This document shows, in pieces, positions 990 through 18,996 of a stretch of 64,000 bases of DNA. Made by a program: the position numbers and the translations under genes. The notes beneath the pieces were generated by a model. The model saw only the letters and a program-made list of their open reading frames with translations, ran no database searches and was not told the DNA's origin. The DNA lies in the sequence record MT446416.1; one strand, given 5' to 3'. The stretch's first letter is position 1, and every line of letters begins with the position of its first letter.

Positions 990-1784
990 TTAAATTACAT
1001 ACGGTTTATAGTAATGAATCTCGTTTGCGATTGCAGTGAAGACTTTATTATTAAATCTTTCACCATAATCACGAAGTGATTCACCTTCTTCGCTTTCAAT
1101 GAAGTAATTATATACTGGTAGACGTGCGTTGTCAACACCTATAAATGATTTCATGTAAATTTGTACTAAACGATTCATTCCTTCATTTAAGCATTGCACC
1201 TCAAAGTGCTTGATACCTTTGTCTAAATGTTTGAATGCATTAATGATACCACGTTTAAAATCACGCTGCATAGTACTGAATAAATTCTCAGGGAACACGG
1301 TAATAGGTGACATTGATTTAAGAATGTATGTATCTTTGGCATTCTTAATGTACTCAATAAAGCAGTAGTTAACGTCCGGCTCAATTGAACGATCCGCGTT
1401 ATGATACCAGTGTTTAAACTCACTGTACTCAGCAAACTTATGCTGGCGTAATGCGTTACAATCCTCACACAGTGCAGTTATGTTCTCTTTATCATTACCG
1501 CCCTGGAGACAGTCCAGTACATTATGGTCTAACGTCATGCGTACAAGGCGTTTACCTTTAAGTACATAAGGTCTGAATTTATAACGGTCTTTAGTACTGT
1601 GCTTATGTAAAGTGAATACCACATTGGATTCACCACAACAATCACATTTAAAGCCATCACGTGACATTACATGAATGAGTTTTCGAGTATTTGGGCCGAA
1701 CTCAGATTTAGTAATGTTGCCGACAATTTCTGATGGGTCGTAGTATTTTGAATTCCGGCGAATCAATTCATCTATAGTGCTCAT
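990..1784 (-). CDS. HNH-family nuclease domain protein
   Basis: RDGFKCDCC...TLDH...GGNDKENITALCEDCN: Zn-binding McrA-type HNH pattern. Confidence 0.6.
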   Translation of the reverse strand: MSTIDELIRRNSKYYDPSEIVGNITKSEFGPNTRKLIHVMSRDGFKCDCCGESNVVFTLHKHSTKDRYKFRPYVLKGKRLVRMTLDHNVLDCLQGGNDKENITALCEDCNALRQHKFAEYSEFKHWYHNADRSIEPDVNYCFIEYIKNAKDTYILKSMSPITVFPENLFSTMQRDFKRGIINAFKHLDKGIKHFEVQCLNEGMNRLVQIYMKSFIGVDNARLPVYNYFIESEEGESLRDYGERFNNKVFTAIANEIHYYKPYVI

Positions 1785-1785
1785 T

Positions 1786-2016
1786 TTACATTAATCCTTC
1801 TATGCTACAACCAATAAGTACTTTTTTCACTTCAATAACTCGTACCAAATAGAATCCATTTGAAAAGTTAAAACTATACATTTGTACTAAGGCATCTGCT
1901 TCAGATTTCGCACGGATACATGATAGATATAGTTCTCGTATATCGCCATCCAACGATGCTTGTTTCTCGTCATTGATAACAATAGAACGAATCTCAAAAC
2001 GAACACCATAACTCAT
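1786..2016 (-). CDS. hypothetical protein
   Basis: ORF track; ATGA-type overlap with neighbour. Confidence 0.6.
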   Translation of the reverse strand: MSYGVRFEIRSIVINDEKQASLDGDIRELYLSCIRAKSEADALVQMYSFNFSNGFYLVRVIEVKKVLIGCSIEGLM

Positions 2017-2222
2017 TCTGTTTGTCCAACAATTAGTTTTTCTTTAGTATTACTATTGTAACACCACATTAATTCTTCACCAACTGTTCTAAGTGAAACG
2101 CTGTTTACTTGTTCATACGTACTGTCACGTACTGCAATGCATTGATTCATTGAATTCATTGGGGTGATTTGTACACCAGATTGTGGTGAAAGAGCAATAA
2201 TTAAAAAGATTACTGAATTCAT
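2013..2222 (-). CDS. small secreted or membrane protein
   Basis: Hydrophobic N-terminus; SD GAGGA; downstream of promoter 2287-2315. Confidence 0.6.
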   Translation of the reverse strand: MNSVIFLIIALSPQSGVQITPMNSMNQCIAVRDSTYEQVNSVSLRTVGEELMWCYNSNTKEKLIVGQTE

Positions 2223-2286
2223 TAGATATTCCTCAATGGTTAATCATCCATCTCTTCGAGATGTCTGTTCGCTTCTAATACTACGT

Positions 2287-2315
2287 ATTCTACGCGAATG
2301 AATCATAACTGTCAA
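2287..2315 (-). promoter_or_regulatory. sigma-70-like promoter
   Basis: TTGACA-N17-TAGAAT. Confidence 0.65.
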
Positions 2316-2378
2316 GGACTTTTAATATTGACGGGATTTGTTGAGGACTTTTTCATCCCCCGCAGGGGAATGATGGTA

Positions 2379-2404
2379 AGAAAAAAGAGACAATTAAGTC
2401 TCTT
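2379..2404 (-). terminator. intrinsic terminator ending the candidate large ncRNA
   Basis: AAGAGAC-ttaatt-GTCTCTT hairpin followed by U tract on minus strand. Confidence 0.6.
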
Positions 2405-2815
2405 CTTGACGCTGATGGCATCGGATTTTATTGTATCGTGAATTTAGGACGGATCTATATTGTAATAAATCAATCGCAAACGGAAGCGGGTTGCTCTGTT
2501 TCTCCCTATCACGGTCATATGCAACGGTCACTGGTCTTTTCATCCCAGCACTCACTTAAAACTCCATACAATCGAAGTTCAAGCTGTCTTATAATAAGAC
2601 TCCCTTAGCAAATCTGGTAAGGTGCGATCCTTATATGTCTATCGAGGAACTCTCGGTATGCTTATCGGAGTTCTTTATACAGCCGCATTGCCGTGAGGGG
2701 TTCAAACTATGCCCACATCTAACGGGTTTCTTTTGCTGTTCGTTCTGTAGCACAACTCATCTGCCCTCTACATTTTCGAGTGGTTCAGGATTATTTTATT
2801 CTAAATGAGCTACAG
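2385..2815 (-). ncRNA. candidate large structured non-coding RNA (~430 nt), class unknown
   Basis: No ORF >=60 aa in any frame; visibly more GC-rich than flanks; stems GAACTC/GAGTTC, CCTTA/TAAGG, GTCTTA-TTA-TAAGAC; ends in terminator. Confidence 0.55.
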
Positions 2816-2827
2816 GTTTTTTTTATT

Positions 2828-3472
2828 CTAAATTTTACTTAATGACAAAGTAATACGTCCATTAAGTAAATCATCGTTTAAAACATCAATTCTACGTTGT
2901 AAACCTTTTATTACACCATCTGACACACTATTATTATATTTTTTAATAATATCAGAAAGATGTTCTTTTTTGGCTAATTGCCATTTTGCATGAGCTTCTT
3001 CAGGTGTGGGAAATGCACCCAAATGATATTTTTTCTTATTTTTGTAAATTTGTGCATAATATGGATTTTTGTATTCAAAACTCATATTTTTTTTAGGTAT
3101 ATGATAACAAACACCAAGTGGTTGATTTTTATTATTTTTGTCAATGATACACATGTTTATTTCATTTGGTACAAATGAACACGTTTCAGGAGAATACATT
3201 TTTTTATTACCGTCGATTAAATCTTTATCTAATTCATAACCATCTTTGTAATTTGATATATACCATTCTTTAAATTTAGAGTATGTTTTCCATTCATCAC
3301 ATATAATAACTCCTATATATGTTTTATGAGTTTCTTGATACTTTTCAGAATAACATCGTTTTATCATATCTTTCCATGTATAATAAACTTTACTATAAAC
3401 ACTTTTTTTTGTGGAATCACCTTTAACATCATTGATTCCAAAACCATATACCAATTTCATATTAAATTCCAA
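2828..3472 (-). CDS. HNH homing endonuclease with AP2-like DNA-binding domain
   Basis: YYTWKDMIKRCY...ICDEWKTYSKFKEW...ELDKD...YSPETC core; YYAQI..KKYHLGAFPTPEEAH AP2-like tail. Confidence 0.75.
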   Translation of the reverse strand: MEFNMKLVYGFGINDVKGDSTKKSVYSKVYYTWKDMIKRCYSEKYQETHKTYIGVIICDEWKTYSKFKEWYISNYKDGYELDKDLIDGNKKMYSPETCSFVPNEINMCIIDKNNKNQPLGVCYHIPKKNMSFEYKNPYYAQIYKNKKKYHLGAFPTPEEAHAKWQLAKKEHLSDIIKKYNNSVSDGVIKGLQRRIDVLNDDLLNGRITLSLSKI

Positions 3473-3491
3473 TTATGGTTATCATACTAAC

Positions 3492-3520
3492 ATTGTATCA
3501 CACTTTCTAAATTTGTCCCA
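3492..3520 (-). promoter_or_regulatory. variant promoter TGGGACA-N13-TGA-TACAAT
   Basis: One of five copies with identical geometry (see findings). Confidence 0.6.
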
Positions 3521-3521
3521 T

Positions 3522-3551
3522 AAAAAAAGGGCTGACAGAAGTCAACCCTTT
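3522..3551 (-). terminator. intrinsic terminator after sigma factor gene
   Basis: AAGGGTTGAC-TTCT-GTCAGCCCTT then T7. Confidence 0.7.
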
Positions 3552-3555
3552 AATC

Positions 3556-4521
3556 TTAAAAATCTTCGAACTCATAACCTTTTGTCTTAACCATCTTACG
3601 CAGTCGTTCCATTGCTTCAGAGTACTTACGGTGCAATGAAGAACGAGCAGTCATGACCTTACCCTTCTCATCTTCAAAACCACTCTCAATGATTTCTCGT
3701 AGCGTTTCTGGTTCAGAATAAGAACCAATACCATGTACACGTTCAATCAATTCACGGTCTTTGGCAGATAGGTTACTCATCATTTCTGCAATACTTTGTA
3801 CCAGTGGGGTACTGACAGTTTCTACGCCTAAGTTGTAATCAGGTTCAACTGAAGTAACAATGTCAGATAATGTACTTTCTGAATCATTACTCATTTTCAT
3901 ATTCAATGCTACATAAGTGTTATTGTAAGTTAGACAATTCTTAACGTGTTGAATCTCAATACCAGTCTCTTTTGACACCATCTCAGGAGTTGGGTATTTA
4001 CCATGTTTCCTTTGATACTCTTCAACACAACGTTTCACATAAATGTTATTAACACTCATATAACGTGGGAAATGCACTAGATAATTAGCATCTGCACTTT
4101 CGTTATAGATTGTCATGTACACAGTTGTTGTTGCATATGTAATGAACTTAACATTTTTGGTAGTGTCGAACGTATGAATTGCTCGCATTAAACCTTCAAC
4201 ACCATAAGAAATCTTATCTTCAAATGGGATAAAACATGTACATTTACGTGCAACACTTACTACCATTGGATAGTTGTAGCGAACCAAAAGGTCAATGTTC
4301 TTTTCAACGTCAATACCATCACGCACTGCTTGGATGAGCATTTCATTCGTTATACCTTTAGGGCGAGTTAAACTGATACCTGTTTTTGGTTTCTCAAACT
4401 TGTGACCGTCATGTTCTTCTTCATCAACCGAATCTAGAGCCTCTAAGACGTTGACTTCTTCACTAGCAAAACACTCATCCAGTACTTCTTCAAAAATTGC
4501 ATTTAAATCAAGCTTTTTCAC
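3556..4521 (-). CDS. RNA polymerase sigma-70-family sigma factor
   Basis: Region 2: LVRYNYPMVVSVARK..FEDKISYGVEGLMRAIHTFD..KFITYAT; region 3 and degenerate region 4 (PETLREI). Confidence 0.85.
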   Translation of the reverse strand: MKKLDLNAIFEEVLDECFASEEVNVLEALDSVDEEEHDGHKFEKPKTGISLTRPKGITNEMLIQAVRDGIDVEKNIDLLVRYNYPMVVSVARKCTCFIPFEDKISYGVEGLMRAIHTFDTTKNVKFITYATTTVYMTIYNESADANYLVHFPRYMSVNNIYVKRCVEEYQRKHGKYPTPEMVSKETGIEIQHVKNCLTYNNTYVALNMKMSNDSESTLSDIVTSVEPDYNLGVETVSTPLVQSIAEMMSNLSAKDRELIERVHGIGSYSEPETLREIIESGFEDEKGKVMTARSSLHRKYSEAMERLRKMVKTKGYEFEDF

Positions 4522-4543: not shown

Positions 4544-5041
4544 TCAAAAACGGTATACATTAATATTATCATCGGTATAGATATCATGGTTATGAACATC
4601 CATGAAGGTATCAAATACCTTATCAAGAAGAGTATTATACTCTTCATGTAATGCTGCATCAAGCATGTATTCACCACCACTACCCATAAAGAATGTATAA
4701 TCATTATGGAGATAATCAATCTTCTTGGTAAACTTACCCTTATTAATGATTAAGTGAATGATGTAATCTTTTGACACAAGAACACAGTGACAACTCGCCT
4801 TGCGGTCTGGTATCACAGTCTCTTGTGAAATCAAGTATCTCAGTACTTTGTTAATTTCACTAACCTCACCGCAAGCACTAAACAGTCGGTCGTGTACATA
4901 CAATGTTTTTTGTGAAACTACACCATAACTAAGTTTTGGCTTCAACGGGAATAGGTTCAAAAATGAACGCTGCTCAGTTGATGTCACTTTTGAATCAGTA
5001 AGTAATACTCCCAAGCGTTTATCAATATAAACAGTTGTCAT
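4544..5041 (-). CDS. putative Ntn-hydrolase (HslV/proteasome-beta-like) protein
   Basis: N-terminal Thr-Thr after Met, LTDSKVT, later MGSGG; pattern match by eye only. Confidence 0.45.
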   Translation of the reverse strand: MTTVYIDKRLGVLLTDSKVTSTEQRSFLNLFPLKPKLSYGVVSQKTLYVHDRLFSACGEVSEINKVLRYLISQETVIPDRKASCHCVLVSKDYIIHLIINKGKFTKKIDYLHNDYTFFMGSGGEYMLDAALHEEYNTLLDKVFDTFMDVHNHDIYTDDNINVYRF

Positions 5042-5042
5042 A

Positions 5043-5462
5043 TTAAACCTTATCTAAAAATTTAGCATAGATATAAAATTCTTTATCGTTGAATACATTA
5101 ATTCTAATATCGAAGCGTTGAAGTGTATTCATGTATAATGAACTTTTTAAATAAAAATACAATGCAACAAATTCAGATATATGCATATTCTTTTTATTAT
5201 TACATAAATTCTTTAGCATTTTAATGCTATCAAAATCATCTTTATCATATCTGTACTGGAAAAAATTGTATCTATTTGAACGGCACTCATAGATGAGAAG
5301 GGCCATTATATCAATACATGCTTGAGATTTACAGTACTTATTCAATACAGGGTAATCACCAGTACATAATGCTACGAAGATTTTATGTGCAAGTGTTGCT
5401 TTGCCTTCAATCGTATAATAGCCAAAAAATTTAATGATTAAGTAATGTATAAATCTAAGCAT
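5043..5462 (-). CDS. hypothetical protein
   Basis: ORF track; packed, co-oriented. Confidence 0.6.
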   Translation of the reverse strand: MLRFIHYLIIKFFGYYTIEGKATLAHKIFVALCTGDYPVLNKYCKSQACIDIMALLIYECRSNRYNFFQYRYDKDDFDSIKMLKNLCNNKKNMHISEFVALYFYLKSSLYMNTLQRFDIRINVFNDKEFYIYAKFLDKV

Positions 5463-5467
5463 TGGAT

Positions 5468-5728
5468 TTAGAATTTCTCCGAAATTACAAGTGTATCATC
5501 ATAGTCATCAGCAACGGAGTTCAGTACTTCCAAATTACTTTCACCAGAAATACTTTGTACTTCGTTCAAAAGATAGTTTAGATCAACAGTTGTTACTTTT
5601 TCTGAATCAAACACACAGAAAGTCAATTCAGCGTTTGGACAGATCTTCTTCAGATTATCAGCAACAACTTGTTTGAAGTTAAAAGATGGGGAAGCAACCA
5701 GGTTAACTGCAACGAGAATAGATTTCAT
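5468..5728 (-). CDS. hypothetical protein
   Basis: ORF track; SD AAGGA. Confidence 0.65.
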   Translation of the reverse strand: MKSILVAVNLVASPSFNFKQVVADNLKKICPNAELTFCVFDSEKVTTVDLNYLLNEVQSISGESNLEVLNSVADDYDDTLVISEKF

Positions 5729-5802
5729 AATGTTTTCCTTTTTAGCTGATAATTAAATTAGGAGCACATTGTACTCCATGTTATTGGTTAAGTCAAATAC
5801 TT

Positions 5803-6054
5803 TTAGATACCGAGTACTGAATTCAATTCTTTACGCTTGTTATATGAATCAGATTCAAACTTGCTTTTCTTATTGAAAAGGGATTCGATATCCTTATAGA
5901 TAGCTTCGATGGATTTAGTTACAACCCATTCGGATTCCTGAAGCATAGCTTGAAGACGTGCGTACTCAACTTTGATAGTACTGCGAAGTTCTTCACAAGC
6001 TTCTTCGTTCTTAATTAGTGCTTCACTAAGTTCTTTGACCTTATCGATGTTCAT
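5803..6054 (-). CDS. hypothetical coiled-coil protein
   Basis: ORF track; heptad-rich; SD AAGGA. Confidence 0.65.
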   Translation of the reverse strand: MNIDKVKELSEALIKNEEACEELRSTIKVEYARLQAMLQESEWVVTKSIEAIYKDIESLFNKKSKFESDSYNKRKELNSVLGI

Positions 6055-6113
6055 AAGTTCCTTACCATTTCCTAGTTTTGATGTAATAATTATATATCTC
6101 TCAATAACTCACG

Positions 6114-6545
6114 TCAACTGTTTTCCGTACCTTTCTCTGCCATTTTGGTGATGTGCCATTTGAGTACTGATTTGTGTACCATAAAAAATGTGAATGCAAA
6201 GACTGTAATGGCTGCTGAAGTAACACTATTAGATAAAGACCCAAGTTGGATGTTAGTACCTAAAATAACAATAAATGGATACAACACAATAAATCTACTG
6301 TAAGGTTCGTCTCCAGTATCACGGATAAATACAAGCCTTTCATGATCAGTATCCATTGTGACAATTACAATTGGAAAGAACATAAGTGCAGACATAAGAG
6401 CAATACCAATTTGTGCTACATTGGAAATTGTAAACCACAAAGGATTTAAACCATATGAAATGTTATTTTCAGTACAGTAATATCCGAATGTATTGAATGT
6501 ACAAACTAAAAATACAAAAATGCAAATCTTATTGTATGCCCTCAT
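6114..6545 (-). CDS. multi-pass membrane protein
   Basis: About four hydrophobic segments. Confidence 0.65.
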   Translation of the reverse strand: MRAYNKICIFVFLVCTFNTFGYYCTENNISYGLNPLWFTISNVAQIGIALMSALMFFPIVIVTMDTDHERLVFIRDTGDEPYSRFIVLYPFIVILGTNIQLGSLSNSVTSAAITVFAFTFFMVHKSVLKWHITKMAEKGTENS

Positions 6546-6979
6546 TTGTTTAGCTCCGTTAATTTTCGTTTAACTTCAAGATCATAATACTCATCAGCAT
6601 ATGAGTTTTGAACAGTTCTTGTATATTCCAACATTACAAACATAGAACCACACACCCACAGATAAGTATAGTAATCAAATACAAAAGCATAGATAATACA
6701 TGGTATTAAAATAAATGTAAACACAAAACTATATCTCTTAGTACCGAATACTTTAACAAAAAGCAGACGGCGGTAATCACGTGCAAATGTATGAATACAT
6801 ATAGAAAATATAATCAATGAATACCATGAAATGCCCTGGATTACACCTGAAACATTTACAAGTTTATGTCCGTCTGGAAACCCCAGTGCATTAAGCACTG
6901 GAGCCATAACCCAACCAATAATAGCAATAAGAAATAGATACTTTGCATTGCTAAGTGTGAACATTATTTCAGTCCCCAT
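6542..6979 (-). CDS. multi-pass membrane protein
   Basis: About four hydrophobic segments; layout similar to neighbour (RLLFVK vs RLVFIR). Confidence 0.65.
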   Translation of the reverse strand: MGTEIMFTLSNAKYLFLIAIIGWVMAPVLNALGFPDGHKLVNVSGVIQGISWYSLIIFSICIHTFARDYRRLLFVKVFGTKRYSFVFTFILIPCIIYAFVFDYYTYLWVCGSMFVMLEYTRTVQNSYADEYYDLEVKRKLTELNK

Positions 6980-7422
6980 GCCTTTTTAATAGCATCCACT
7001 GCGTTCTGGTCTACGACTTCCTGTTTAGTAGCACTGGCTTGTAGTTTATCAACTACATAGTTCTTAGCATCTTTTTCAATCATAAACTTACCATCAACTA
7101 AACACCCAAATACTTTAGAGTTACGTGCTGGGTATGTCCCGATTTCATCAAGAGTACGAACTTTCTTATCAACTACAATTGCTTTGATGTAACCAGTTTC
7201 CAGTACTGTAGTAATGACAGTCATTTCGATTGCAATTGGTGACTCTTCCCAGAATGCAATCCACTTTGTGAAGCTGCGATCCGGTGAATCTTTTGTTGGC
7301 TTCAGTTTAATTGCACTGTTGAAAATGTACTGCTTGAATCCATCTTCAACCACTTCACTGATACTTAGGTAACCTTCACGTTCTTCTGCGTTGCGTTTGA
7401 ATTGAGTAGCTAATACGTCCAT
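6964..7422 (-). CDS. hypothetical protein
   Basis: ORF track; SD GAGGA. Confidence 0.7.
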   Translation of the reverse strand: MDVLATQFKRNAEEREGYLSISEVVEDGFKQYIFNSAIKLKPTKDSPDRSFTKWIAFWEESPIAIEMTVITTVLETGYIKAIVVDKKVRTLDEIGTYPARNSKVFGCLVDGKFMIEKDAKNYVVDKLQASATKQEVVDQNAVDAIKKAWGLK

Positions 7423-7475
7423 CGTTAAATCCTCTTGTCAGTTATTGCGGTACGAAGCTATTATACTACCATTTA

Positions 7476-7919
7476 CTATTTGGAGTCAACACATTTCAAC
7501 AAGTATTTTTCTATGTATCTTATATGTGATGGTGGTAACAGTAAGTTTTCGTATCTAACCCTGTACACACTACAATCTCCTAGATGAAAATGACTGGTAG
7601 GATACAAGTCAGTTCTAATACTAACACGTTTACGATTATCAGTAAAGTTAATTAATGATTTTGGATTGTTATTAGCATGAGTTCTTACAAAGTATTCAAT
7701 TTCATTGAGTGCTTTTTCGTCGTATACATACTTGTCAAACACACCTAGTGTAAAGTACCTTGGATGGTACATATATGAGAATAACAATGCAGGAATATAC
7801 TTCTTTATCCCTTCGTGTTTTGCAATAGCTGAAGCATATGCAAAATGTGATGCATCAGAGAAGATGTTAAGAAAAATGAAATATGACACTAATAAACCTA
7901 GAATCAGCAAAAGTGTCAT
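7476..7919 (-). CDS. membrane-anchored hypothetical protein
   Basis: Hydrophobic N-terminus. Confidence 0.6.
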   Translation of the reverse strand: MTLLLILGLLVSYFIFLNIFSDASHFAYASAIAKHEGIKKYIPALLFSYMYHPRYFTLGVFDKYVYDEKALNEIEYFVRTHANNNPKSLINFTDNRKRVSIRTDLYPTSHFHLGDCSVYRVRYENLLLPPSHIRYIEKYLLKCVDSK

Positions 7920-8380
7920 TCAAAACCTCTGTATTTTTCATATACTTCAACACATTCCATGATCTTGTCATCATCAGTCATGTCATAACCCTGAAGAAAT
8001 TCTTCTTTATCAACATTAGCAGCCATCATGTCATCATCCGAAATCCTTGAATCATAGAATGTGTACATATCTTTATAGTACTGCTTGTTGTGCTGTTCAT
8101 CCTTAACCTTAGCATACCCAGCACAAAACGATGGTGATTTAACTACATTCCATTTATGCTTTTTGATAGGCTTATCATTAGCATGTTTTTCACGGTATTG
8201 CTGGCGGTAACGTTCACGCATCTCAGGCATGTATTCTTCCGCAGTACGTTTTGGTTGGGCTTTCCCTGTTCCAATCGTCTTGATTGTTTGACGCTGGTCT
8301 TCCGCATGTACTGGTGCAACAAAGCAGGAAGTACTGAATACAACAGCAGTGATTACTAGAAAGTGTTTAAACATAATCAA
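7916..8380 (-). CDS. exported protein with signal peptide
   Basis: MFKHFLVITAVVFSTSCFVAPVHA-ED signal peptide pattern. Confidence 0.65.
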   Translation of the reverse strand: MIMFKHFLVITAVVFSTSCFVAPVHAEDQRQTIKTIGTGKAQPKRTAEEYMPEMRERYRQQYREKHANDKPIKKHKWNVVKSPSFCAGYAKVKDEQHNKQYYKDMYTFYDSRISDDDMMAANVDKEEFLQGYDMTDDDKIMECVEVYEKYRGFE

Positions 8381-8604
8381 ACCTCTTTTACAATAATGTC
8401 GATTTGCACAGGAATAGCAATCTCACTATTGCATGAATAAACATCTGCACAGTACTCAATATCTAGTACTTCATAGTATTTTTCAAAGCCACAGATTGTA
8501 AGATTCAACGTAGCACCAATAGCTGGCAATACGGGAAAGGATAAAAATGCAATTTTAGAATTAAATTCTTCATTAATATCTTGATATACAGTGGCAGTAA
8601 TCAT
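8377..8604 (-). CDS. hypothetical protein
   Basis: ORF track; overlapping start/stop. Confidence 0.6.
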   Translation of the reverse strand: MITATVYQDINEEFNSKIAFLSFPVLPAIGATLNLTICGFEKYYEVLDIEYCADVYSCNSEIAIPVQIDIIVKEV

Positions 8605-9185
8605 AATGGTAACTCCTGAAGTGGTTTAATAATACTCAGTACTGGGTGATTTTCAATCATCGGTCGCCCTGGTACACCTGTTAGCACAACTGGAATCGAA
8701 CTAATGTCTTTTACATAGTTGAATCCCTCAAATGTGAATTCTTGCTTTTTCTCATTATACAATACCCACAGAATAACGTCAGCTTTTTTCTGTATATTTT
8801 TTAACTGTCGAGTACTAACACATGGTCCAAAGTCTGTCCACGATTTGTACTTGATACCTTTCACTTCAATTCTTAAGTTGTTTACTTTGATATCACATTC
8901 ACCATCACGACCATCACTTTGGAACGCTGGATCAATGTTAAGTGCAATACCTGAATAGTTTTCAATTTCATTAAAAAGTACAAATGATGCATGTTCACAT
9001 ACCATCCCTACAAAATGACTGTGAGCGTGATTAAATCCATACGGCGATTTACTTGCAGGTGCAAGAATCTTATATCGTTCAGATTTCTCAATTGCTTTAG
9101 CCATAAAAGAATCAGCTTCATCTTTGTATAGCTTAACAGTCATTTTGCCATTTTTCAGTACTAAACGTTTTTCTACAACACTCAT
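8601..9185 (-). CDS. putative PD-(D/E)xK nuclease-fold protein
   Basis: GMVCE...CDIKVNNLRIEVKG fits D-x(n)-E-x-K. Confidence 0.45.
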   Translation of the reverse strand: MSVVEKRLVLKNGKMTVKLYKDEADSFMAKAIEKSERYKILAPASKSPYGFNHAHSHFVGMVCEHASFVLFNEIENYSGIALNIDPAFQSDGRDGECDIKVNNLRIEVKGIKYKSWTDFGPCVSTRQLKNIQKKADVILWVLYNEKKQEFTFEGFNYVKDISSIPVVLTGVPGRPMIENHPVLSIIKPLQELPL

Positions 9186-9301
9186 AAAATCCCCTTATTG
9201 ATATTCCATTTAAGTATACGTCAAAAACACAACTCAGTCAAGGTGCTTTTTTACCTATCCAGAATAAATACGTTATAATAATTATACCAATGGAGGGATG
9301 A

Positions 9302-10459
9302 ATGTCAAGATCGATTGCTGCTGCTGGACGATATAAGTTCGGTGAATGTGGATATGTAGTCGATGGTGCAATTCTCAACGATGGGACTAAACTCAAAAAT
9401 GTTCGAATCTATCGTCATAGAAGCCATAGATTATATGATTTACTTGATCCTGTAAGTAATGTAATTTATCGTAAAGTACAAATTACAACAAAGGATATAC
9501 AAGGATATCAATTAAACTACAACAAAACTAATGATCAAATCCTAAGTGAAATAAGAAAGAACTCTTTTTTCGTAAGAGGATACTCAGATGCTAAACTTGA
9601 ATCAGATCCTACTGGGTTTGTTTATAAGTTTCTTTTGCACAAAACAATTCTAGGTAGTTCACAAACACTATATAATATGTACACCCCTGAATGCGGGATT
9701 ATAGATAGAGATATAGACAACATCCTTATGTTCCCAACGTTCGTAGGTGATGATTTGGTAGGTGGTCGCCTATTCAACGCAGGTTCAGCCATTGATACAA
9801 CTGGAATGCGTATTACCGTTATACTTCCTGACGGAACCGAGTACTTCACAACTGAAATAATTGATGATGTTTTTAGTATTCCAGTTGATCCAATTACTCA
9901 ATCCGGTAAAGGAACCATCATACTCACTTCTGACATATATAATACCAAAACTATTGAATTTGATATACTAGAAAGCGGCGAAGATATTGACTTCGTTACT
10001 TCAGTACTTCTATCTCAGTTTGAGTACACGTCCGATGGTATGTACATGGCAACTGTACCAGCTACTGTGCATGAGCGTGGTGAGTATCTTGCTCTACAAG
10101 CATACAGTGGTGATTTATTCCAAATTGGAGTAGACCTCATTGTAGATCCTAGCGGTAATATTACTGTGTACCAAACTGATGATGCTCCAATCTCATTGAG
10201 TATTATTGGTAAAACCTTACACACCACTCCATATCACAACACGTATACTGATAGTGATTGGGTAGTTGATGGTGATTCTATGTACACACTGTCCATTCCT
10301 GCCAGTGAACATGGTAAAATCCTCCCACAAGTTCAAGTCTATGCTGAAGACAATCACGTTGTACTAAGTGAAGTTGAACTAGATGCCGATGATAATGTTG
10401 TATTAAAAGTTGTTGAACCATTTGGCTGTACTGTAGTCATTGTTGGTTATAACGCATAA
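9302..10459 (+). CDS. probable virion structural protein (only long plus-strand gene)
   Basis: 385 aa, acidic and beta-rich, two similar C-terminal repeats; SD GGAGG; AATAAATA upstream. Confidence 0.7.
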   Translation: MSRSIAAAGRYKFGECGYVVDGAILNDGTKLKNVRIYRHRSHRLYDLLDPVSNVIYRKVQITTKDIQGYQLNYNKTNDQILSEIRKNSFFVRGYSDAKLESDPTGFVYKFLLHKTILGSSQTLYNMYTPECGIIDRDIDNILMFPTFVGDDLVGGRLFNAGSAIDTTGMRITVILPDGTEYFTTEIIDDVFSIPVDPITQSGKGTIILTSDIYNTKTIEFDILESGEDIDFVTSVLLSQFEYTSDGMYMATVPATVHERGEYLALQAYSGDLFQIGVDLIVDPSGNITVYQTDDAPISLSIIGKTLHTTPYHNTYTDSDWVVDGDSMYTLSIPASEHGKILPQVQVYAEDNHVVLSEVELDADDNVVLKVVEPFGCTVVIVGYNA

Positions 10460-10460
10460 C

Positions 10461-10494
10461 AAAAAAGCCACTACAATGTAGTGGCTTTTCTTTT
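10461..10494. terminator. bidirectional intrinsic terminator
   Basis: AAAAAAGCCACTAC-AAT-GTAGTGGCTTTT between convergent genes. Confidence 0.8.
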
Positions 10495-10503
10495 ATCTAT
10501 ATC

Positions 10504-11328
10504 TTATTTGAAGTTTTTACGTAGAACTTCTTCCAGTGTTTGTTCTGGATTAGCAATTGCAACAGTGTAAATCAAATCTTTGAATGCCTGTACTGCTTGC
10601 TCAGTTGCTTCTTTACCGAAGTTAGCTGAAATACTGCTAAACATATTTTCAGCACGTTCAGAACTAATTAGTTCATTAACAAAGGTATCAATCTCTTTTT
10701 TGAGTTGTCCAGTTGTCATGTCACCAATTAGCATTTCATCAACTTCTGGCTTTTCATCAGTACTAACACGTACATTTGTAAAGCCAAATACATCATCCAG
10801 TGAACCAAAACTATGTTTAACTTTAGAAACAATAGATGGCTTGGTGCGTTCTACTGGTTCTACTGGTTCTTCTTGTTTCTCTTCAGAATCAGTACTTGAT
10901 TCGTATGGCTTGGTGAACATATGAGTGAGAACGTCATCAATGTTTTTAATCATACCTTCAACACGTTCTTCAGTTTTCTTAGTAACTTCTTTGAATGCTT
11001 GCTCAAGTAGACGATCTTGAACTGTAGTACGTACATCACCAACAACACCACGTAATTTTTCATTACACTGGTCTAGAATTGATAATAGTTCACCACTTTT
11101 AATTTTGTCAACCAATAAATCAAGGTCAGATTTAACTTCAGGTTTCTTCTCAATACCATTTAGTAAGCTGTTAAGCTCTTGAGCACCCTCAATCGCTTCT
11201 TGATGACTGGTAAATTGAACAGGCACATCAACACCATCTAGAACGATATTGAGTACTTTACCATCTACATAAGCGTAAGAGTAATATTCTTTTTTGAAGG
11301 AAATGGTTTTGAAGAAAATGTTGCTCAT
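10504..11328 (-). CDS. hypothetical protein
   Basis: ORF track, 274 aa; SD GGAG. Confidence 0.75.
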   Translation of the reverse strand: MSNIFFKTISFKKEYYSYAYVDGKVLNIVLDGVDVPVQFTSHQEAIEGAQELNSLLNGIEKKPEVKSDLDLLVDKIKSGELLSILDQCNEKLRGVVGDVRTTVQDRLLEQAFKEVTKKTEERVEGMIKNIDDVLTHMFTKPYESSTDSEEKQEEPVEPVERTKPSIVSKVKHSFGSLDDVFGFTNVRVSTDEKPEVDEMLIGDMTTGQLKKEIDTFVNELISSERAENMFSSISANFGKEATEQAVQAFKDLIYTVAIANPEQTLEEVLRKNFK

Positions 11329-11339
11329 ATTGTTACTCC

Positions 11340-11681
11340 TTATTTCCCAGATGCTGGGTATGTTTTAAACATATAGTGACATTGTACTAAATCATTGAAT
11401 TTCAATCCAAAATCTTTAGTACCCATCAGTGTGTGATAAAAATAATGTGAAATCTCATTGGTTTCTGCATCTTTAATATAGATACCGAACTCGGTACAGC
11501 AGAACTGAACGACTTCATTATAACCTACTAATTTCGAAACAACAAGTACTTGATCATAAGAATTTGCATCAAAACGAATGATATACATATCTTCAGTTTC
11601 AGGATGCACAATCATACCACCACGTGAAATGATTTTGACAAAATTCTCGCTCAAGTACTGAATTGTTGAACTCATGTCCAT
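11340..11681 (-). CDS. hypothetical protein
   Basis: ORF track. Confidence 0.65.
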   Translation of the reverse strand: MDMSSTIQYLSENFVKIISRGGMIVHPETEDMYIIRFDANSYDQVLVVSKLVGYNEVVQFCCTEFGIYIKDAETNEISHYFYHTLMGTKDFGLKFNDLVQCHYMFKTYPASGK

Positions 11682-11891
11682 CTACGACTCCTTGCGTATA
11701 ACACGTCCTGTTAAGTGCTCATCTGCACAGAACTTCATTATAAATGCCTTAAGATAGAAGTTGTCTAAGATGCGGTATGCTTGCTTCTTCATAACAACTT
11801 CCTTCTTTTCTACATCTACAATTATATCATGTTCTTCATGAAGTTCCTGGATCATTTTGTAAGTTTGGAAATTTAGTACGCTCATAACCAC
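11682..11891 (-). CDS. hypothetical protein
   Basis: ORF track. Confidence 0.55.
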   Translation of the reverse strand: MVMSVLNFQTYKMIQELHEEHDIIVDVEKKEVVMKKQAYRILDNFYLKAFIMKFCADEHLTGRVIRKES

Positions 11892-12201
11892 CTATATCCT
11901 CCATTTCCCATAAAATTCCAATCGCAACTGAAAGATCATGGTGAATTTGAAAATAGCCATGTGCAGCAGTGTAGATATAACCATGCTTGGTTATTGCATA
12001 ACCCCACTTCTTACTCTCCGAATGCATCGCACGCTTCAATGCATATGGTGATCGGGGTAGCTTCTCTGGCTCTGGCTCACGGTTTTCGTTGTAAATCTCT
12101 TGTTCGATTCTCAACGCTTTATGATATGAGTATACATGAATTAGACGACAAAGTACAATAGTAATGCAACAAATAATTGTAAAATATATCAGATTAATCA
12201 T
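11836..12201 (-). CDS. membrane-anchored hypothetical protein
   Basis: N-terminal TM segment. Confidence 0.6.
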   Translation of the reverse strand: MINLIYFTIICCITIVLCRLIHVYSYHKALRIEQEIYNENREPEPEKLPRSPYALKRAMHSESKKWGYAITKHGYIYTAAHGYFQIHHDLSVAIGILWEMEDIGGYERTKFPNLQNDPGTS

Positions 12202-12617
12202 TTCAACCTCTGCATAGAAACGTACTCGTTGATTGCATCAACTAAATCATATCCAGACATCACCGTATCATTGATGGTCACATTGTACTTTTTACGAACT
12301 TGTGTACCATCTGTTTTACTGTATAGTGATCCATCTGGTTGAATTGTTAAAGTATTGTTTAGAATAAAATCAAACATTTCTTCTTTTGATAGATTTACAG
12401 TACGTGTGTCAATATGATCAGTACTTACCAATTCACGAGTATGTTTGACACCGTACTCGGTGTGTTCACCTACACTACGATGCAATACCTTTAACTGCTC
12501 GGCTGCTGTCTCTTCATCATAGACATGAATAGTTTCAGTACTGTATACAATATCTTGAATATTACCAGTACTTACTTCTGTCCATGTATCTTTGAAATGT
12601 GTTTTGATTGTTTTCAT
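12198..12617 (-). CDS. hypothetical protein
   Basis: ORF track. Confidence 0.65.
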   Translation of the reverse strand: MKTIKTHFKDTWTEVSTGNIQDIVYSTETIHVYDEETAAEQLKVLHRSVGEHTEYGVKHTRELVSTDHIDTRTVNLSKEEMFDFILNNTLTIQPDGSLYSKTDGTQVRKKYNVTINDTVMSGYDLVDAINEYVSMQRLK

Positions 12618-12628
12618 AGTAGTTCGTA

Positions 12629-13078
12629 TTAGTTATATGAAGTGAATAAATCAATATTTGCATCATCTACACTGATTAATTTACCAGTTGAACTAACAAA
12701 CACAATATTACCACCAGGGGTGAGTTGAACACGCTGGTTTACTGAATATTGATCACTAAGGTTATAATTAGCCCATTCAACTACATAACGCTGTTCAACA
12801 CCATTAGTATCATAAAGATAAACGTGTGTAACATCACGCATTTTTAAACGTTCTAGTAGTGTTGAGTTATCCATGAAATCAGATGGTGTGTCACTACGTA
12901 ATGCGATACCGAACTCACCAATACCAGTACGAATAGTTAGACCGTTGGAAAAACGACTACAAAGAGTTTTCTCGTCAGCAATATGCATCCATAAAACATT
13001 CTTTACTTCAATCTCAATGAACTCACAATTTTCAAAAACTAAACCTACTTTAGAAACCTTACCATTAAATTGCATCAT
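12629..13078 (-). CDS. hypothetical protein
   Basis: ORF track; SD AGGAG. Confidence 0.7.
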   Translation of the reverse strand: MMQFNGKVSKVGLVFENCEFIEIEVKNVLWMHIADEKTLCSRFSNGLTIRTGIGEFGIALRSDTPSDFMDNSTLLERLKMRDVTHVYLYDTNGVEQRYVVEWANYNLSDQYSVNQRVQLTPGGNIVFVSSTGKLISVDDANIDLFTSYN

Positions 13079-13535
13079 AAACTCCTGTTTTTTTGTATTT
13101 TAAAATAAAATCTCTTGCTGCTTTCATAAGTTTAAATGGAATAGCTAATTCTTTAACAGTACTATCCATGAAATGTTCTTCTTCTGTATCATAGAATGTT
13201 GACATGTAATGGTCACAATCGTCAATTCTATCCCAGAAATCGGATGTACTTGGCTTGTTAGCGATGACAGTTATTTGTTTATCAGTTTTAGTATAGGAGG
13301 CATGTATCGTTAATCCAACATCACCCTTTTCAACACGAATTATAAACGAATTATTAGATGTATAACTCAGCCAACAATCTTCACCGAAGTATACAGTACT
13401 GTGTTTCTTCTCAAATGTATTACTGTTTTCAAGTACATCAATGACAATATCAACCGCATTGTCACTTAAAATTTTGACCATATCATCTTCCTCGTAGGTT
13501 TCTGGCAATTTCAAAGATACCATTAATGTTGTCAA
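13065..13535 (-). CDS. FQxST-motif paralogue
   Basis: C-terminal TEEEHFMDSTVKE. Confidence 0.7.
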   Translation of the reverse strand: MTTLMVSLKLPETYEEDDMVKILSDNAVDIVIDVLENSNTFEKKHSTVYFGEDCWLSYTSNNSFIIRVEKGDVGLTIHASYTKTDKQITVIANKPSTSDFWDRIDDCDHYMSTFYDTEEEHFMDSTVKELAIPFKLMKAARDFILKYKKTGVYDAI

Positions 13536-13887
13536 CTGTCAATCCACACATATCGTATACAGTAGATAGCTGAAAGAACATATCTTCATCTATAGTAACA
13601 TGTTCAATCTGCATTTGCAAGAGCACTTCACCAAGAAAATGATCGTATGTTTGTATCTTAAAAGAATCATAATATATATCAATGAAGAATTTTGGCACAC
13701 CATAGAACGAAACGACAAGTACAATGTTGTCAGAAGCTTCACATGGAACACTCAATGTATTTTTAAATGAACGGTATTCAAATGTGTACGGGTCCACGTC
13801 ACATGTATAGAATGAACTACACCCTTCAGAAAATATTACACCATTTTCAATTAGCATAGATAGTGCATGTGGTGGAATTTTCAACAT
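13483..13887 (-). CDS. FQxST-motif paralogue
   Basis: C-terminal DEDMFFQLSTVYD. Confidence 0.7.
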   Translation of the reverse strand: MLKIPPHALSMLIENGVIFSEGCSSFYTCDVDPYTFEYRSFKNTLSVPCEASDNIVLVVSFYGVPKFFIDIYYDSFKIQTYDHFLGEVLLQMQIEHVTIDEDMFFQLSTVYDMCGLTVDNINGIFEIARNLRGR

Positions 13888-13895
13888 TTCAATGT

Positions 13896-14372
13896 TTATC
13901 CTTTATTTTGTTGTACGTTATTATGTAGTACACCACAAATATAAAATAATTTACTTAGATTAGAATAACTTATGTTAGTTAGATCGTATACGAAATTTAG
14001 TTGCATATACATATCTTCAGTTAAATCATACAATGATTCGTCCACATCAATTACAATTTTCTTTGTAGTGTCAATCTCTACTTTATTAGGCCATACATCA
14101 ATAACATAATCATCACCATGTTTTTCAGATATGGAAATGAAAACATTATCGCTTTGTTCTAAAAACTCCATGTATCCGTTAAGAAATGATCCAGTTATTA
14201 TCTCATATTCACCAGAATGATACGTTGTTCTGGACTCAAATTCATTTAAAAATATCAAACGATATGTTTGGTTGATATACTCATCAATTAAACTAATAAC
14301 TTCTTTATTCATTACATTAATCCCCACAAGAAAAAAGGCCGATTCATAATGAATCAGCCTTAAGTATAACAC
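13896..14372 (-). CDS. FQxST-motif paralogue (divergent; true start probably MNKEV)
   Basis: C-terminal TEDMYMQLNFVYD. Confidence 0.65.
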   Translation of the reverse strand: MLYLRLIHYESAFFLVGINVMNKEVISLIDEYINQTYRLIFLNEFESRTTYHSGEYEIITGSFLNGYMEFLEQSDNVFISISEKHGDDYVIDVWPNKVEIDTTKKIVIDVDESLYDLTEDMYMQLNFVYDLTNISYSNLSKLFYICGVLHNNVQQNKG

Positions 14373-14552
14373 AGTAGAAGTAAAAATGTCAACTTCTAAA
14401 ATACAGTATCAAAGAGGAATAAAAAAGATACTGTTAGAGGGTAACGAATATAATGAACCATGAGGGTGATATCATTATACTTTAAAAGAGTGATAGCTTC
14501 TAGACAAAAGGAGGAATTCAGTACCGACTAGAAGCTATCCGGTTAAACGATT

Positions 14553-14837
14553 TCAGTACTGAATGTTTAGTTTAGGATGAGTATGTCCATCTTCGATTTG
14601 CTTTAGAATCGAGTCGCGGATCTCCACTGCACCCTGATAACTGTATTTATCGTTCGGAACTACCCATGTATATTCACCATCAGTGGTTTTAAAATCAATA
14701 CATGGATTGTCTCTGTATTCAGATGCAATGATTGATATAACATGCAATGAATTCAATGAATGATTTGTATAAGGATAATTGTTATTGTCTCGGAACGTGA
14801 ATGTTTTTAGTTCATCAGGTGCAACAATAAATTCCAT
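14553..14837 (-). CDS. hypothetical protein
   Basis: ORF track. Confidence 0.6.
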   Translation of the reverse strand: MEFIVAPDELKTFTFRDNNNYPYTNHSLNSLHVISIIASEYRDNPCIDFKTTDGEYTWVVPNDKYSYQGAVEIRDSILKQIEDGHTHPKLNIQY

Positions 14838-15028: not shown

Positions 15029-15041
15029 ATTAAGCTCCGAG

Positions 15042-15810: not shown

Positions 15811-15827
15811 AGTGTACCTTAAAAAAT

Positions 15828-18753: not shown

Positions 18754-18782
18754 GATTTGGGTGTTCCTAGTGTTTCATTATT

Positions 18783-18996
<214 letters not shown>

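Follow-up and report, generated by a model that had tools for sequence, protein, structure and literature searches.

A new family of multi-copy RNA genes with a predicted pseudoknotted structure in Rak2-like jumbo phages and enterobacterial islands

Several described systems bear on the element analyzed here. ROOL (RF03087) and GOLLD (RF01998) are large ornate RNAs of phages and prophages; our element shares with them a large size (about 0.5-0.8 kb), an elaborate fold, carriage by phages and prophage-like elements, and the lack of a known function. However, it matches neither model even at E<=10, occurs in different hosts (Enterobacterales and their jumbo phages), is present in 3-6 evenly spaced copies per genome, is not adjacent to tRNAs here, and has an invariant box beyond its terminator-like hairpin. 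In the ColE1-type origin, a sigma-70 promoter lies about 550 nt upstream of a conserved site, the RNA II pre-primer must fold, no element-encoded initiator protein is needed, and a G-run is reportedly involved in hybrid formation (Masukata and Tomizawa). Our element resembles it in a conserved promoter located a median of 536 nt from the end of a conserved box and in a covarying fold. In contrast to ColE1, it was not found among 72,556 plasmids, occurs in several copies per replicon, shows no sequence or Rfam similarity, and has no conserved antisense RNA I-type promoter near its 5' end that was evident by eye in the alignment; priming by it is only hypothesized.

T4-like genomes have several origins, including ori(uvsY)/oriF and ori(34)/oriG, each consisting of a promoter and a downstream region where the transcript forms an R-loop primer, and plasmids carrying such origins are reported to be replicated and transduced by T4 (Kreuzer and Alberts, 1985-86). 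The dispersal of several promoter-containing units over one genome is shared by our element, and Rak2-like phages have T4-like replication genes (PMC5259590, PMC7247149), but T4 origin transcripts are not known to have a conserved fold and the T4 origin is about 100 bp, whereas here a 450-nt covarying structure precedes the box and origin activity is inferred. HK022 put and other processive antitermination RNAs are likewise promoter-proximal structured RNAs upstream of a terminator-like hairpin that work with the host RNA polymerase, as our element would in both phage and island contexts; however, it is five to eight times larger, is often followed by a separate promoter, and in one conserved copy is antisense to its neighbors. 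Finally, Pseudomonas jumbo phage PA5oct, distantly related to the Rak2 group, has four ORF-free transcribed regions of 236-619 nt defined by RNA-seq (ncRNA001-004), two of which are highly expressed throughout infection (PMC7318152). An nhmmer comparison found no similarity of our element to ncRNA001 or ncRNA002, the two that were compared, and no structure or copy relationship has been reported for these RNAs.

The RNA gene and its copies

The window, a 64,000-nt stretch of record MT446416.1, belongs to Escherichia phage TH47, an Asteriusvirus related to 121Q and Rak2. A first-pass annotation of its sequence had pointed to an unexplained structured non-coding RNA of about 430 nt at 2385-2815, more GC-rich than its flanks, with four stems and a terminator. 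This observation is confirmed, although the unit extends over 2322-2820 of the minus strand and its promoter lies on the far side of the neighboring ORF (Table 1). No ORF of 60 aa or more lies between 2223 and 2827, where only ORFs of 57 aa or less occur on either strand, and GC is 0.41-0.45 in 2401-2800 against 0.33-0.36 to the left and 0.23-0.27 in the ORF to the right. Three of the four stems proposed there, GAACTC/GAGTTC (H4), CCTTA/TAAGG (H5), and GTCTTA-TTA-TAAGAC (H7), are helices of a conserved structure supported by covarying relatives, whereas the fourth, GAGC-AACCC-GCTT, is nearly invariant and, where it varies, A-U becomes G.U on the minus strand. The proposed terminator does exist on the minus strand as a hairpin plus U6, but conservation continues about 60 nt beyond it.

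Table 1. Features of the RNA gene copy in the TH47 window and of its immediate surroundings (window positions; A2, alignment of the relatives)
Position	Strand	Feature	Details and supporting observations
3556-4521		Upstream sigma-factor gene	Sigma-70 regions 2 and 3 in the ORF
3526-3551	-	Terminator of the sigma-factor gene	Listed by a terminator scan; marks the upstream boundary of the RNA's transcription unit
3492-3519	-	Promoter of the RNA gene	-35 GGGACA (3519-3514), 16-nt spacer, TG-extended -10 TACAAT (3497-3492); listed with TG by a promoter scan; homologous box conserved in all relatives (-10 TAYAMT in 60/60, TG in 46/60; nearly invariant columns 45-74 of A2); -10/-35 signals annotated at this place in the fHe-Yen9-03 record
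2828-3472	-	Inserted ORF (214 aa), C-terminal half of an HNH-endonuclease-family protein	GC 0.23-0.27; PHROG 953 'HNH endonuclease', profile positions 194-403 of 420, E 3.5e-74; no Pfam family at E<=0.01; no PDB relative; absent from the ph0011 orthologue
2801-2820	-	Remnant of the conserved 5' leader motif	AAAACCUGUAGC, consensus ACAAUCCUGNUUG; read against leader columns 121-137 of A2
2405-2800	-	Structured body	H1 2788-2778/2768-2761; H2 2756-2754/2744-2742; H3 2739-2735/2683-2679 with 2725-2722/2694-2691; H4 2673-2668/2652-2647; H5 2633-2629/2622-2618; H7 2600-2595/2591-2586; H10 2550-2546/2533-2529; H11 2513-2509/2441-2437; H12 2506-2502/2486-2482; H13 2479-2477/2447-2445; H14 2422-2419/2411-2408; H5 and the H7 variants read off the alignments
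2554-2585	-	Pseudoknot hairpin H8, with loop pairing H9	H8 about 12 bp, 2585-2574/2565-2554: 47 distinct stem sequences among 61, best stem mean 9.9 bp against 5.2 in shuffles, 12 of 12 pairs with compensatory changes; loop 2572-2566 (AUUGUAU) pairs with 2436-2430 (AUACAAU) to form H9: 7 of 7 pairs with compensatory changes, 99.5% paired
2448-2476	-	Optional module at the tip of H13	Conserved core UACAAUAUAGAUCCGUCC; in other copies at the tip of H7, at both tips, or at neither; 4 occurrences in TH47, only inside these elements
2381-2403	-	Hairpin H15 followed by U6	2403-2398/2391-2386; looks like an intrinsic terminator but is internal to the conserved unit; 5 of 6 pairs covary where present; missing in about half of the relatives; U5 run ahead of the 3' box in 34/60; not listed by the terminator scan
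2322-2375	-	Conserved 3' box	CCCC-UGC-GGGGG hairpin (H16, 2369-2365/2361-2357), then AUGAAAAAGUCCUCAACAAAUCCCGUCAA; second CGUCAA box at 2411-2406; present in all 61 sequences; H16 varies only by C-to-U opposite G (55 U.G cells; non-standard cells 4 in all); box motifs unique to the 4 modules in TH47
2287-2315	-	Flanking sigma-70 promoter TTGACA-17-TAGAAT	For the downstream cluster of small ORFs; not part of the RNA, marks the next transcription unit; best promoter match in the scan (11 of 12); homologous TTGACA boxes with AT-rich upstream sequence follow many other copies

The unit is one of four paralogous copies in TH47 and was found in 73 phage records at 3-6 places each, in more than 100 instances in IMG/VR and metagenome loci, and in 8 of the 17 genome-contig loci fetched by an exact pattern; the family was recovered with nhmmer. 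Each gene is about 440-630 nt from the start site to the end of the conserved unit. On 61 non-redundant sequences, 78 base pairs in 14 helices are 94.6% canonical, compared with 75% in shuffles and about 40% when partners are slid, and 58 of the 78 pairs show changes on both sides; in the first RNAalifold pass, 38 of 72 pairs were compensatory. The minus-strand fold has z = -3.46 against z = -1.05 for the plus strand.

The copies share one strand and are evenly spaced. In phage CBB, five copies lie at 32.3, 94.2, 174.4, 258.2, and 336.3 kb of 355.9 kb, with P(smallest gap >= 52 kb) = 0.005 and P(largest gap <= 84 kb) = 0.001, the 94-kb copy having been predicted from the TH47 synteny before it was looked for; the spacing in TH47 gives P of about 0.02-0.05. 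However, the even spacing rests on essentially one ancestral arrangement and the test was designed after TH47 had been seen, while a common strand is expected by chance about 40% of the time, given that 79% of coding sequence is on that strand. Paralogues keep conserved syntenic positions across genera, and those within Asteriusvirus are homogenized by gene conversion.

In Enterobacterales, the unit lies beside an integrase in islands of about 10 kb or more (about 10 kb where the whole island was read). The usual order is integrase, the RNA, and a convergent CI-like repressor, with defense cargo including DarT/DarG-like genes and others. No rep or primase gene was seen in the Enterobacter island, the only one read end to end; a second island was only partly covered. 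Examples of such islands are the E. coli LR-29-1 ffs island and the Enterobacter hofB-nadC island. The gene content and the shared module would fit phage satellites, in the sense of integrative islands that lack replication, transfer, or capsid genes and share a cis element with a helper phage, mobilization by a Rak2-like phage being conjecture.

The neighboring ORF and similarity to known RNAs

The interpretation given in the first-pass annotation is supported only in part. It is a large structured non-coding RNA on the strand implied there, and of the two alternatives offered, a new class fits, whereas a relative of ROOL or GOLLD does not. A cmscan of the window at gathering score and permissive scans at E<=10 of the window copy, the intact ph0011 copy, and an island copy gave no hit to ROOL, GOLLD, RNase P, or tmRNA; the short stretch AACAGAGCAACCCGCUU resembles M1 RNA, which is a lead only. 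The group I model finds a true intron at 18494-18807 of the same window but nothing in 2200-3600 at E<=10, and the element is intergenic and has its own promoter. Rfam 15 has nothing on the family, and papers on phAPEC6, CBB, UE-S1, and PA5oct, a screen for structured RNAs in viruses and phages, and studies on jumbo-phage satellites do not mention it.

The RNA had also been viewed as lying downstream of an HNH-AP2 gene and, by analogy with tRNA-HNH pairings, as a possible homing target. However, it is not a 3' appendix of an HNH gene: the closest relative, ph0011, 91% identical in the flanks, has the same RNA next to the sigma-factor gene without this ORF, and in TH47 about 700 nt, including the ORF, replace about 45 nt between the RNA's own promoter and its body. 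Presence and absence of an endonuclease-family gene beside a conserved site in close relatives conform to the homing idea, whereas an intact catalytic domain was not found, since the truncated ORF has no Pfam HNH or AP2 hit and matches only the C-terminal half of the PHROG family. A homing-target role of the RNA gene is plausible but remains conjectural. The nearest tRNAs are 14 kb away, so the tRNA-cluster analogy does not apply.

Possible functions

The existence of the family of RNA genes, the architecture of its members (a sigma-70-type promoter with a TG-extended -10, a short leader, a body of at least 14 helices with a hairpin-loop pseudoknot, an often-present hairpin plus U-run, and an invariant 3' box composed of a CCCC/GGGG hairpin, a G-run, and CCUCAACAAAUCYCGUCAR), its distribution in phages and islands, and the landing of a truncated homing-endonuclease-family ORF in the TH47 copy are established by this analysis. 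In contrast, any function, including origin activity, a persistent RNA-DNA hybrid, RNase H processing, and DNA synthesis from the RNA 3' end, is inferred from sequence, without transcript, replication-intermediate, or coverage data for any member. Our preferred explanation, held tentatively, is that each unit is a replication-origin module. Host RNA polymerase would start at the strong promoter, the transcript would fold, the G-rich RNA at the 3' box would stay hybridized to the template as an R-loop, and its 3' end, possibly after processing, would prime leading-strand synthesis in the direction of transcription, which is also that of about 79% of the genes. This would resemble ColE1 RNA II in needing a folded pre-primer and the T4 origins in being several promoter-driven origins per genome. 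The first-pass annotation had regarded mapping of the region as the replication origin as a refutation; in our view this is a leading explanation and does not contradict the RNA being real.

The spacing of the copies on one strand would fit action in cis at the chromosome level. The RNA has no defined 3' end, as the hairpin plus U-run is absent in nearly half of the members and an invariant box without covarying partners always follows, which is what one expects where RNA hands over to DNA; H16 keeps pairing through C-to-U changes, so the transcript does reach the box. Absence from plasmids fits an origin that cannot run a plasmid alone, and islands lacking replication genes would use the module to be copied, and then packaged, when such a phage infects. 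On the other hand, a 14-helix pseudoknotted fold with long invariant joining regions is more elaborate than any known primer RNA and looks more like an RNP scaffold or a ribozyme, most phage copies have a terminator-like hairpin plus U6-7 upstream of the proposed priming box, six G's is a weak R-loop signal, and island copies could equally serve the island's own transcription.

A somewhat less favored and doubtful possibility is a trans-acting, stable RNA in the sense of ROOL, GOLLD, or phi29 pRNA, made from several gene copies for dosage and acting as a scaffold, a ribozyme, or a partner of a phage or host protein, with islands encoding their own version to sense, mimic, or interfere with the phage's RNA. 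The complex, strongly covarying fold with a pseudoknot and long invariant single-stranded stretches, the strong promoter, gene conversion among paralogues, as in multi-copy RNA genes, and the U5 run in 34 of 60 members, the mark of a terminator that would give a discrete RNA of about 450-500 nt, agree with this view, as does the occurrence of large ornate RNAs of unknown function in phages and prophages. However, even spacing on one strand is not expected for a diffusible product, nearly half of the members have no terminator, the most conserved sequence lies downstream of the terminator where one exists, syntenic positions are conserved, and no partner protein gene is consistently adjacent in phages or islands.

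Less likely still is a cis-acting transcription element, in which a promoter-proximal RNA, with or without a non-template-strand DNA box, would modify the transcribing RNA polymerase by processive antitermination like HK022 put or by recruitment like ops/RfaH, so that transcription would run through the internal terminator into long downstream gene blocks and, in islands, antisense through the CI-like gene into the cro-side operon. In its favor, the internal terminator-like hairpin is followed by a box conserved as sequence, not as pairs, the RNA points in the direction of downstream gene arrays in 3 of 4 TH47 copies, and in most islands it converges on the CI-like gene and is co-directional with the ner/cro-like operon beyond it. 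But many phage copies are followed at once by a separate strong sigma-70 promoter, so read-through seems unnecessary, at the baseplate-hub/endonuclease VII locus the RNA is antisense to both neighbors, and known antitermination RNAs are 60-120 nt, not about 500 nt. It is very unlikely that the element is not an RNA at all but a DNA-level repeat (a recombination, packaging, or protein-binding site, or a structured single-stranded DNA element) or a decayed or short protein-coding region, although some GenBank records place small ORFs on it ('hypothetical protein x3'), the two TTGACG/CGUCAR boxes and the 3' box are conserved as plain sequence, and G.T pairs would also be tolerated in single-stranded DNA. 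Against this, the compensatory changes come with frequent 1-2-nt indels, no ORF is conserved, and a conserved promoter points into the element in every member.

A further, rather unlikely possibility is that the roughly 600-bp module is the cis-acting handle linking two kinds of mobile element, evenly spaced origins fired by a folded RNA in Rak2-like phages and a single copy by which small defense islands get themselves replicated and packaged by such phages. If so, it would be the first molecular determinant of jumbo-phage satellitism and a new kind of structured primer RNA. Islands of this general kind, though larger, in Pseudomonas, and with unrelated gene content, were recently shown to be jumbo-phage satellites whose hijacking determinant is unknown, a problem posed as open in 2025 (PMC12595487, PMC12772148); the shared element makes this question testable in E. 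coli. Rak2-like phages are candidates for therapy and biocontrol whose replication origins and non-coding genes are unmapped, and the element is a concrete, testable candidate for how a 350-kb genome starts replication. Whatever its function, it adds a well-supported family of large pseudoknotted bacterial and phage RNAs missing from Rfam, with enough sequence diversity for 3D modeling and cryo-EM.

Strand assignment and alternative readings of the sequence

Other readings of the sequence were considered and rejected. Coding is contradicted by the absence of a conserved ORF, and a candidate ORF of 11-14 aa in the 3' box changes frame between lineages. Hammerhead-like CUGAnGA boxes on the plus strand have no stem II or GAAA partner and no Rfam hit, and C3 is not conserved. 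The GGACG..TGTA module is not a phage promoter, as it occurs only inside the elements. Of two possible plus-strand promoters, TTGACG-N17-TATTGT (2406-2434) overlaps helix H9, which covaries, and is thus not conserved as a -10, whereas TTGACG-N17-TTTCAT (2327-2355) has T at -11 in nearly all members and remains unexplained.

An initial pass on the plus strand seemed to favor that strand because of G.U pairs, but neither an unbiased count on common covarying pairs (20 to 12) nor the consensus folding energy (-150.2 against -149.4) discriminated between the strands. With the hand-built structure on 61 sequences, G.U versus A.C counts over the same pairs are 343 to 61 for the minus strand, in agreement with the conserved promoter.

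Conservation, structure and strand of the element

The window belongs to Escherichia virus TH47 (MT446416.1; 100% identity over the 601 bases around the element), an unannotated 352-kb Asteriusvirus of the 121Q/PBECO4/Rak2 group of jumbo phages, and window positions equal TH47 positions minus 143,725. All ORFs in the first 6 kb run on the minus strand. The observation made in the first-pass annotation, an ORF-free stretch that is more GC-rich than its flanks and rich in stems, is confirmed: no ORF of 60 aa or more lies between the two flanking ORFs, GC rises to 0.41-0.45 as compared to 0.33-0.36 on the left and 0.23-0.27 on the right, and the reported stems are all present. The minus strand folds better than shuffled sequences (z = -3.46), whereas the plus strand does not (z = -1.05). 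A search against Rfam 15 identified a group I intron and three tRNAs elsewhere in the window, but nothing in this stretch, even at E<=10 on both strands.

The element is a repeated and widely conserved unit. BLAST found it in 73 phage records, at 3-6 places per genome, in phages infecting Escherichia, Klebsiella, Salmonella, Erwinia, Yersinia, Serratia, Cronobacter, Pectobacterium, and Xanthomonas. TH47 has four copies, all in one orientation and 72-88% identical. Pattern scans of IMG/VR, metagenomes, and GTDB genomes followed by nhmmer gave more than 100 instances. From the phage and metagenome loci, 61 non-redundant sequences, 58-90% identical to the window copy, were aligned (alignment A2).

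RNAalifold applied to the first 26 sequences predicted 72 base pairs, 38 of them with compensatory changes. We then rebuilt the structure by hand and evaluated it on A2. The resulting 78 pairs in 14 helices are canonical in 94.6% of cells, compared with 74.9% after column shuffling (none of 500 shuffles reached the observed value) and 38-45% when the 3' partners were slid by 1-3 columns; 58 pairs, and 869 cells, show changes on both sides. The long-range helices H3, H9, and H11 are 99-100% paired, with two to four Watson-Crick pair types per position. H8 is a hairpin of about 12 bp with 47 different stem sequences among the 61 members, and its 7-nt loop is the 5' strand of H9, which pairs with a segment about 130 nt downstream, thus forming a hairpin-loop pseudoknot. 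H5 shows a compensatory deletion, in which UAAGG/CCUUA becomes UAGG/CCUA. In addition, a module of about 35 nt with the conserved core UACAAUAUAGAUCCGUCC is located at the tip of H13, of H7, of both or of neither, depending on the copy, and occurs nowhere else in TH47.

The same 78 pairs contain 343 G.U cells against 61 A.C cells, and several positions switch between G.U and A-U or C-G, for example column 709/730 in H12 and column 630/641 in H8; these switches keep pairing only on the minus strand of the window. Upstream on that strand every relative has a promoter, with the -10 box TAYAMT in 60 of 60 sequences, a preceding TG in 46 of 60, and a TGAAAC/TGGGAC/TGGAAC box 16-18 nt further up. 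This is the "TGAAACG plus TATA" promoter class that was noticed by the CBB and GAP32 authors mostly in front of DNA-synthesis genes (PMC5259590), and the fHe-Yen9-03 record annotates -10/-35 signals at this place. In the window the promoter is GGGACA-16-TACAAT with TG, located directly after the terminator of a phage sigma factor gene, whose product has Pfam regions 2 and 3 but no region 4 hit. In several lineages, including the 49-kb copy of TH47, a hairpin followed by U5-7 sits directly after the -10 box, at the very 5' end of the RNA, and could be an attenuator or a terminator for read-through from upstream.

The median length from the likely start to the end of the conserved unit is 536 nt. 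A U5 run ahead of the 3' box, the mark of the hairpin plus U-run, occurs in 34 of 60 members. In all 61 members it is an invariant box that follows, comprising a CCCC/GGGG hairpin that varies only by C-to-U opposite G (55 U.G cells and only 4 non-standard cells) and then GGAUGAAA..CCUCAACAAAUCYCGUCAR. Thus the inferred transcript reaches at least that hairpin. The rest of the box, as well as a second CGUCAR box upstream of the terminator-like hairpin, are conserved as plain sequence with no pairing partner.

Genomic context in phages and bacterial islands

The first-pass annotation placed the RNA downstream of an HNH gene. However, in the closest relative, ph0011, the same RNA lies between the same small genes and the sigma factor gene without this ORF, whereas in TH47 about 700 nt including the ORF replace about 45 nt of leader between the promoter and the conserved leader motif. 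The ORF has no Pfam hit and matches positions 194-403 of the 420-position PHROG 953 "HNH endonuclease"; it is therefore the DNA-binding half of a homing-endonuclease family, without a recognisable nuclease domain. Consequently, in this phage the RNA is probably made as the 3' part of the ORF transcript, which is a local accident and not a feature of the family. A second, full-length homing-endonuclease-like ORF (264 aa), which matches PHROG 35175 "HNH endonuclease" at E 3e-149 with a weak Pfam HNH_5 hit, lies two genes downstream of the RNA and is also present in ph0011.

Copies keep conserved syntenic places in phage genomes. One example is the site between the baseplate-hub gene and endonuclease VII in Escherichia, Salmonella, Erwinia, Serratia, and Xanthomonas phages, where the RNA is antisense to both neighbours. 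Elsewhere a copy lies between co-directional gene arrays and is often followed by a strong sigma-70 promoter for a cluster of small ORFs. In CBB, five copies are found on one strand of the 355.9-kb unique genome; the 94-kb copy was predicted from TH47 synteny and then found in an annotated 660-nt gap. The gaps between these copies are 62, 80, 84, 78, and 52 kb; for random placement on a circle, P(smallest gap >= 52) = 0.005 and P(largest gap <= 84) = 0.001, whereas TH47 gives P of about 0.02-0.05. The shared strand alone means little, since 79% of the TH47 coding sequence is on that strand. The Asteriusvirus paralogues cluster together in a tree, and the UE-S1 copy at the baseplate locus is a chimera, its 3' domain resembling the window (sigma-locus) paralogue and its 5' domain the 121Q baseplate-locus paralogue; thus gene conversion occurs between copies.

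Full-length members, with promoter and 3' box, were also found in eight genome assemblies: Serratia fonticola (a complete chromosome), Serratia sp., Enterobacter chinensis, Silvania, Buttiauxella, two Enterobacteriaceae assemblies, and one probable contaminant contig. In the loci examined, the unit lies next to an integrase, either a large serine recombinase or a tyrosine recombinase, and in most of them the order is integrase, RNA, and a convergent CI-like S24 repressor. The integrative island of Enterobacter, of about 10 kb, is located between hofB and nadC and contains a serine recombinase as the integrase, the RNA, a CI-like repressor, a Ner-like protein, two small genes, an invertase, DarT, a DarG-like protein (a 561-aa ADP-ribosylglycohydrolase protein), and a UvrD-like helicase; no replication, capsid, or transfer gene was seen, and it looks like a mobile DarTG-type defence island. 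The Serratia island has two ParB-like genes beside the RNA. Two of 5,426 complete E. coli genomes have a diverged copy in an island next to ffs (SRP RNA), which RefSeq leaves unannotated; in strain LR-29-1 it lies in a 1.4-kb gap of an island with an IS3-disrupted tyrosine integrase and DUF4326, DUF488, and dual-OB genes. None of 72,556 plasmids has the element. In the tree, the island copies group with the copy from Xanthomonas phage XaC1.

Comparison with known RNAs and possible functions

No Rfam family matches the window copy, the intact ph0011 copy, or an island copy. The papers that we read on phAPEC6, CBB, UE-S1, and PA5oct, as well as a screen for structured RNAs in viruses and phages, do not mention the element. 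PA5oct has four ncRNAs defined by RNA-seq, and the two that were compared with the element are not similar to it. Two papers of 2025 show that integrase-plus-defence islands without transfer or replication genes can be satellites of a jumbo phage, by a recognition mechanism as yet unknown (PMC12595487, PMC12772148); those islands and that phage are from Pseudomonas, and no shared RNA element is described. The interpretation offered in the first-pass annotation is supported only in part: the element is indeed a large structured RNA, but instead of a one-off RNA downstream of an HNH gene it is a member of a new, widespread family of large pseudoknotted RNA genes, multi-copy and evenly spaced in Rak2-like jumbo phages and shared with integrative islands.

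What the analysis demonstrates is a strongly covarying fold specific to the transcribed strand, a conserved promoter, the frequent lack of a clean 3' end, an invariant sequence box at the end, the even spacing of copies in phages, the presence in islands, with no replication gene seen in the one island read end to end, and the absence from plasmids. Any function, including priming, origin activity, and copying of the islands by a phage, is inferred from these features. We tentatively favour a replication-origin module whose folded transcript would prime DNA synthesis at the 3' box, combining ColE1 RNA II-like folding with T4-like multiple promoter-driven origins, and which islands would borrow in order to be copied by the phage. 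This would explain the spacing, the missing terminators, the DNA-like conservation of the box, the island context, and the absence from plasmids. However, nothing shows priming, the fold is far more elaborate than those of known primers, and many copies have a terminator-like hairpin before the box.

A trans-acting large RNA, which we consider somewhat more doubtful, would account for the fold and the terminators, but explains neither the spacing nor the box. A cis-acting antitermination or leader element seems unlikely: it would explain the internal terminator and the island geometry, but not the separate downstream promoters or the antisense copy. Finally, some records place small ORFs on the element and its boxes are conserved as plain sequence, as might be expected of a DNA-only or coding element, but compensatory changes, indels, the lack of a conserved ORF, and the conserved promoter make this possibility very unlikely.

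Other features of the loci

Positions of the element copies and neighbouring features
Sequence	Position	Strand	Feature
Window	990-1784	-	Full-length homing-endonuclease-like ORF
Window	2013-2222	-	ORF flanking the ORF-free stretch
Window	2321-2799		Stretch found by BLAST in phage records
Window	2403-2381	-	Hairpin plus U-run
Window	2828-3472	-	ORF between promoter and conserved leader motif
Window	3519-3492	-	Promoter of the RNA
Window	3556-4521	-	Phage sigma factor
Window	16277-16348		tRNA gene
Window	17644-17716		tRNA gene
Window	18494-18807	-	Group I intron
Window	21300-21371	-	tRNA gene
TH47	49.4 kb		Element copy
TH47	146.0 kb		Element copy (the window)
TH47	262.0 kb		Element copy
TH47	345.5 kb		Element copy
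CBB	32.3 kb		Element copy
CBB	94.2 kb		Element copy
CBB	174.4 kb		Element copy
CBB	258.2 kb		Element copy
CBB	336.3 kb		Element copy
Locus L001 (UE-S1, baseplate locus)	3002-3586		Chimeric copy
Locus L003 (TH47, 49-kb copy)	about 49900-49960		Hairpin and U5-7 after the -10 box
Loci L040, L092 and relatives			Hairpin and U5-7 after the -10 box
Locus L129 (island copy)	about 2650-2700		Inverted repeat upstream of the -35 box
Loci L143, L133, L136 (island copies)			Inverted repeat upstream of the -35 box
Locus L139 (Serratia fonticola)	4775-5490		Two tandem rof genes
Locus L146 (Enterobacter chinensis)	5909-16183		Integrative island
Locus L151 (E. coli LR-29-1 chromosome)	4753-15303		Island next to ffs with diverged copy

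The group I intron (Rfam 100.5 bits) and the three tRNA genes lie 14-19 kb from the element. In the four island loci listed, a perfect 13-bp inverted repeat, CCCTATAAATATC-GGTA-GATATTTATAGGG, is located about 14 bp upstream of the -35 box of the RNA, and may be an operator for the CI-like or Ner-like protein. In Serratia fonticola, two tandem rof genes (87 aa each) lie at the island-chromosome junction next to tilS, which suggests that the island integrated at or near rof and brought a second copy.
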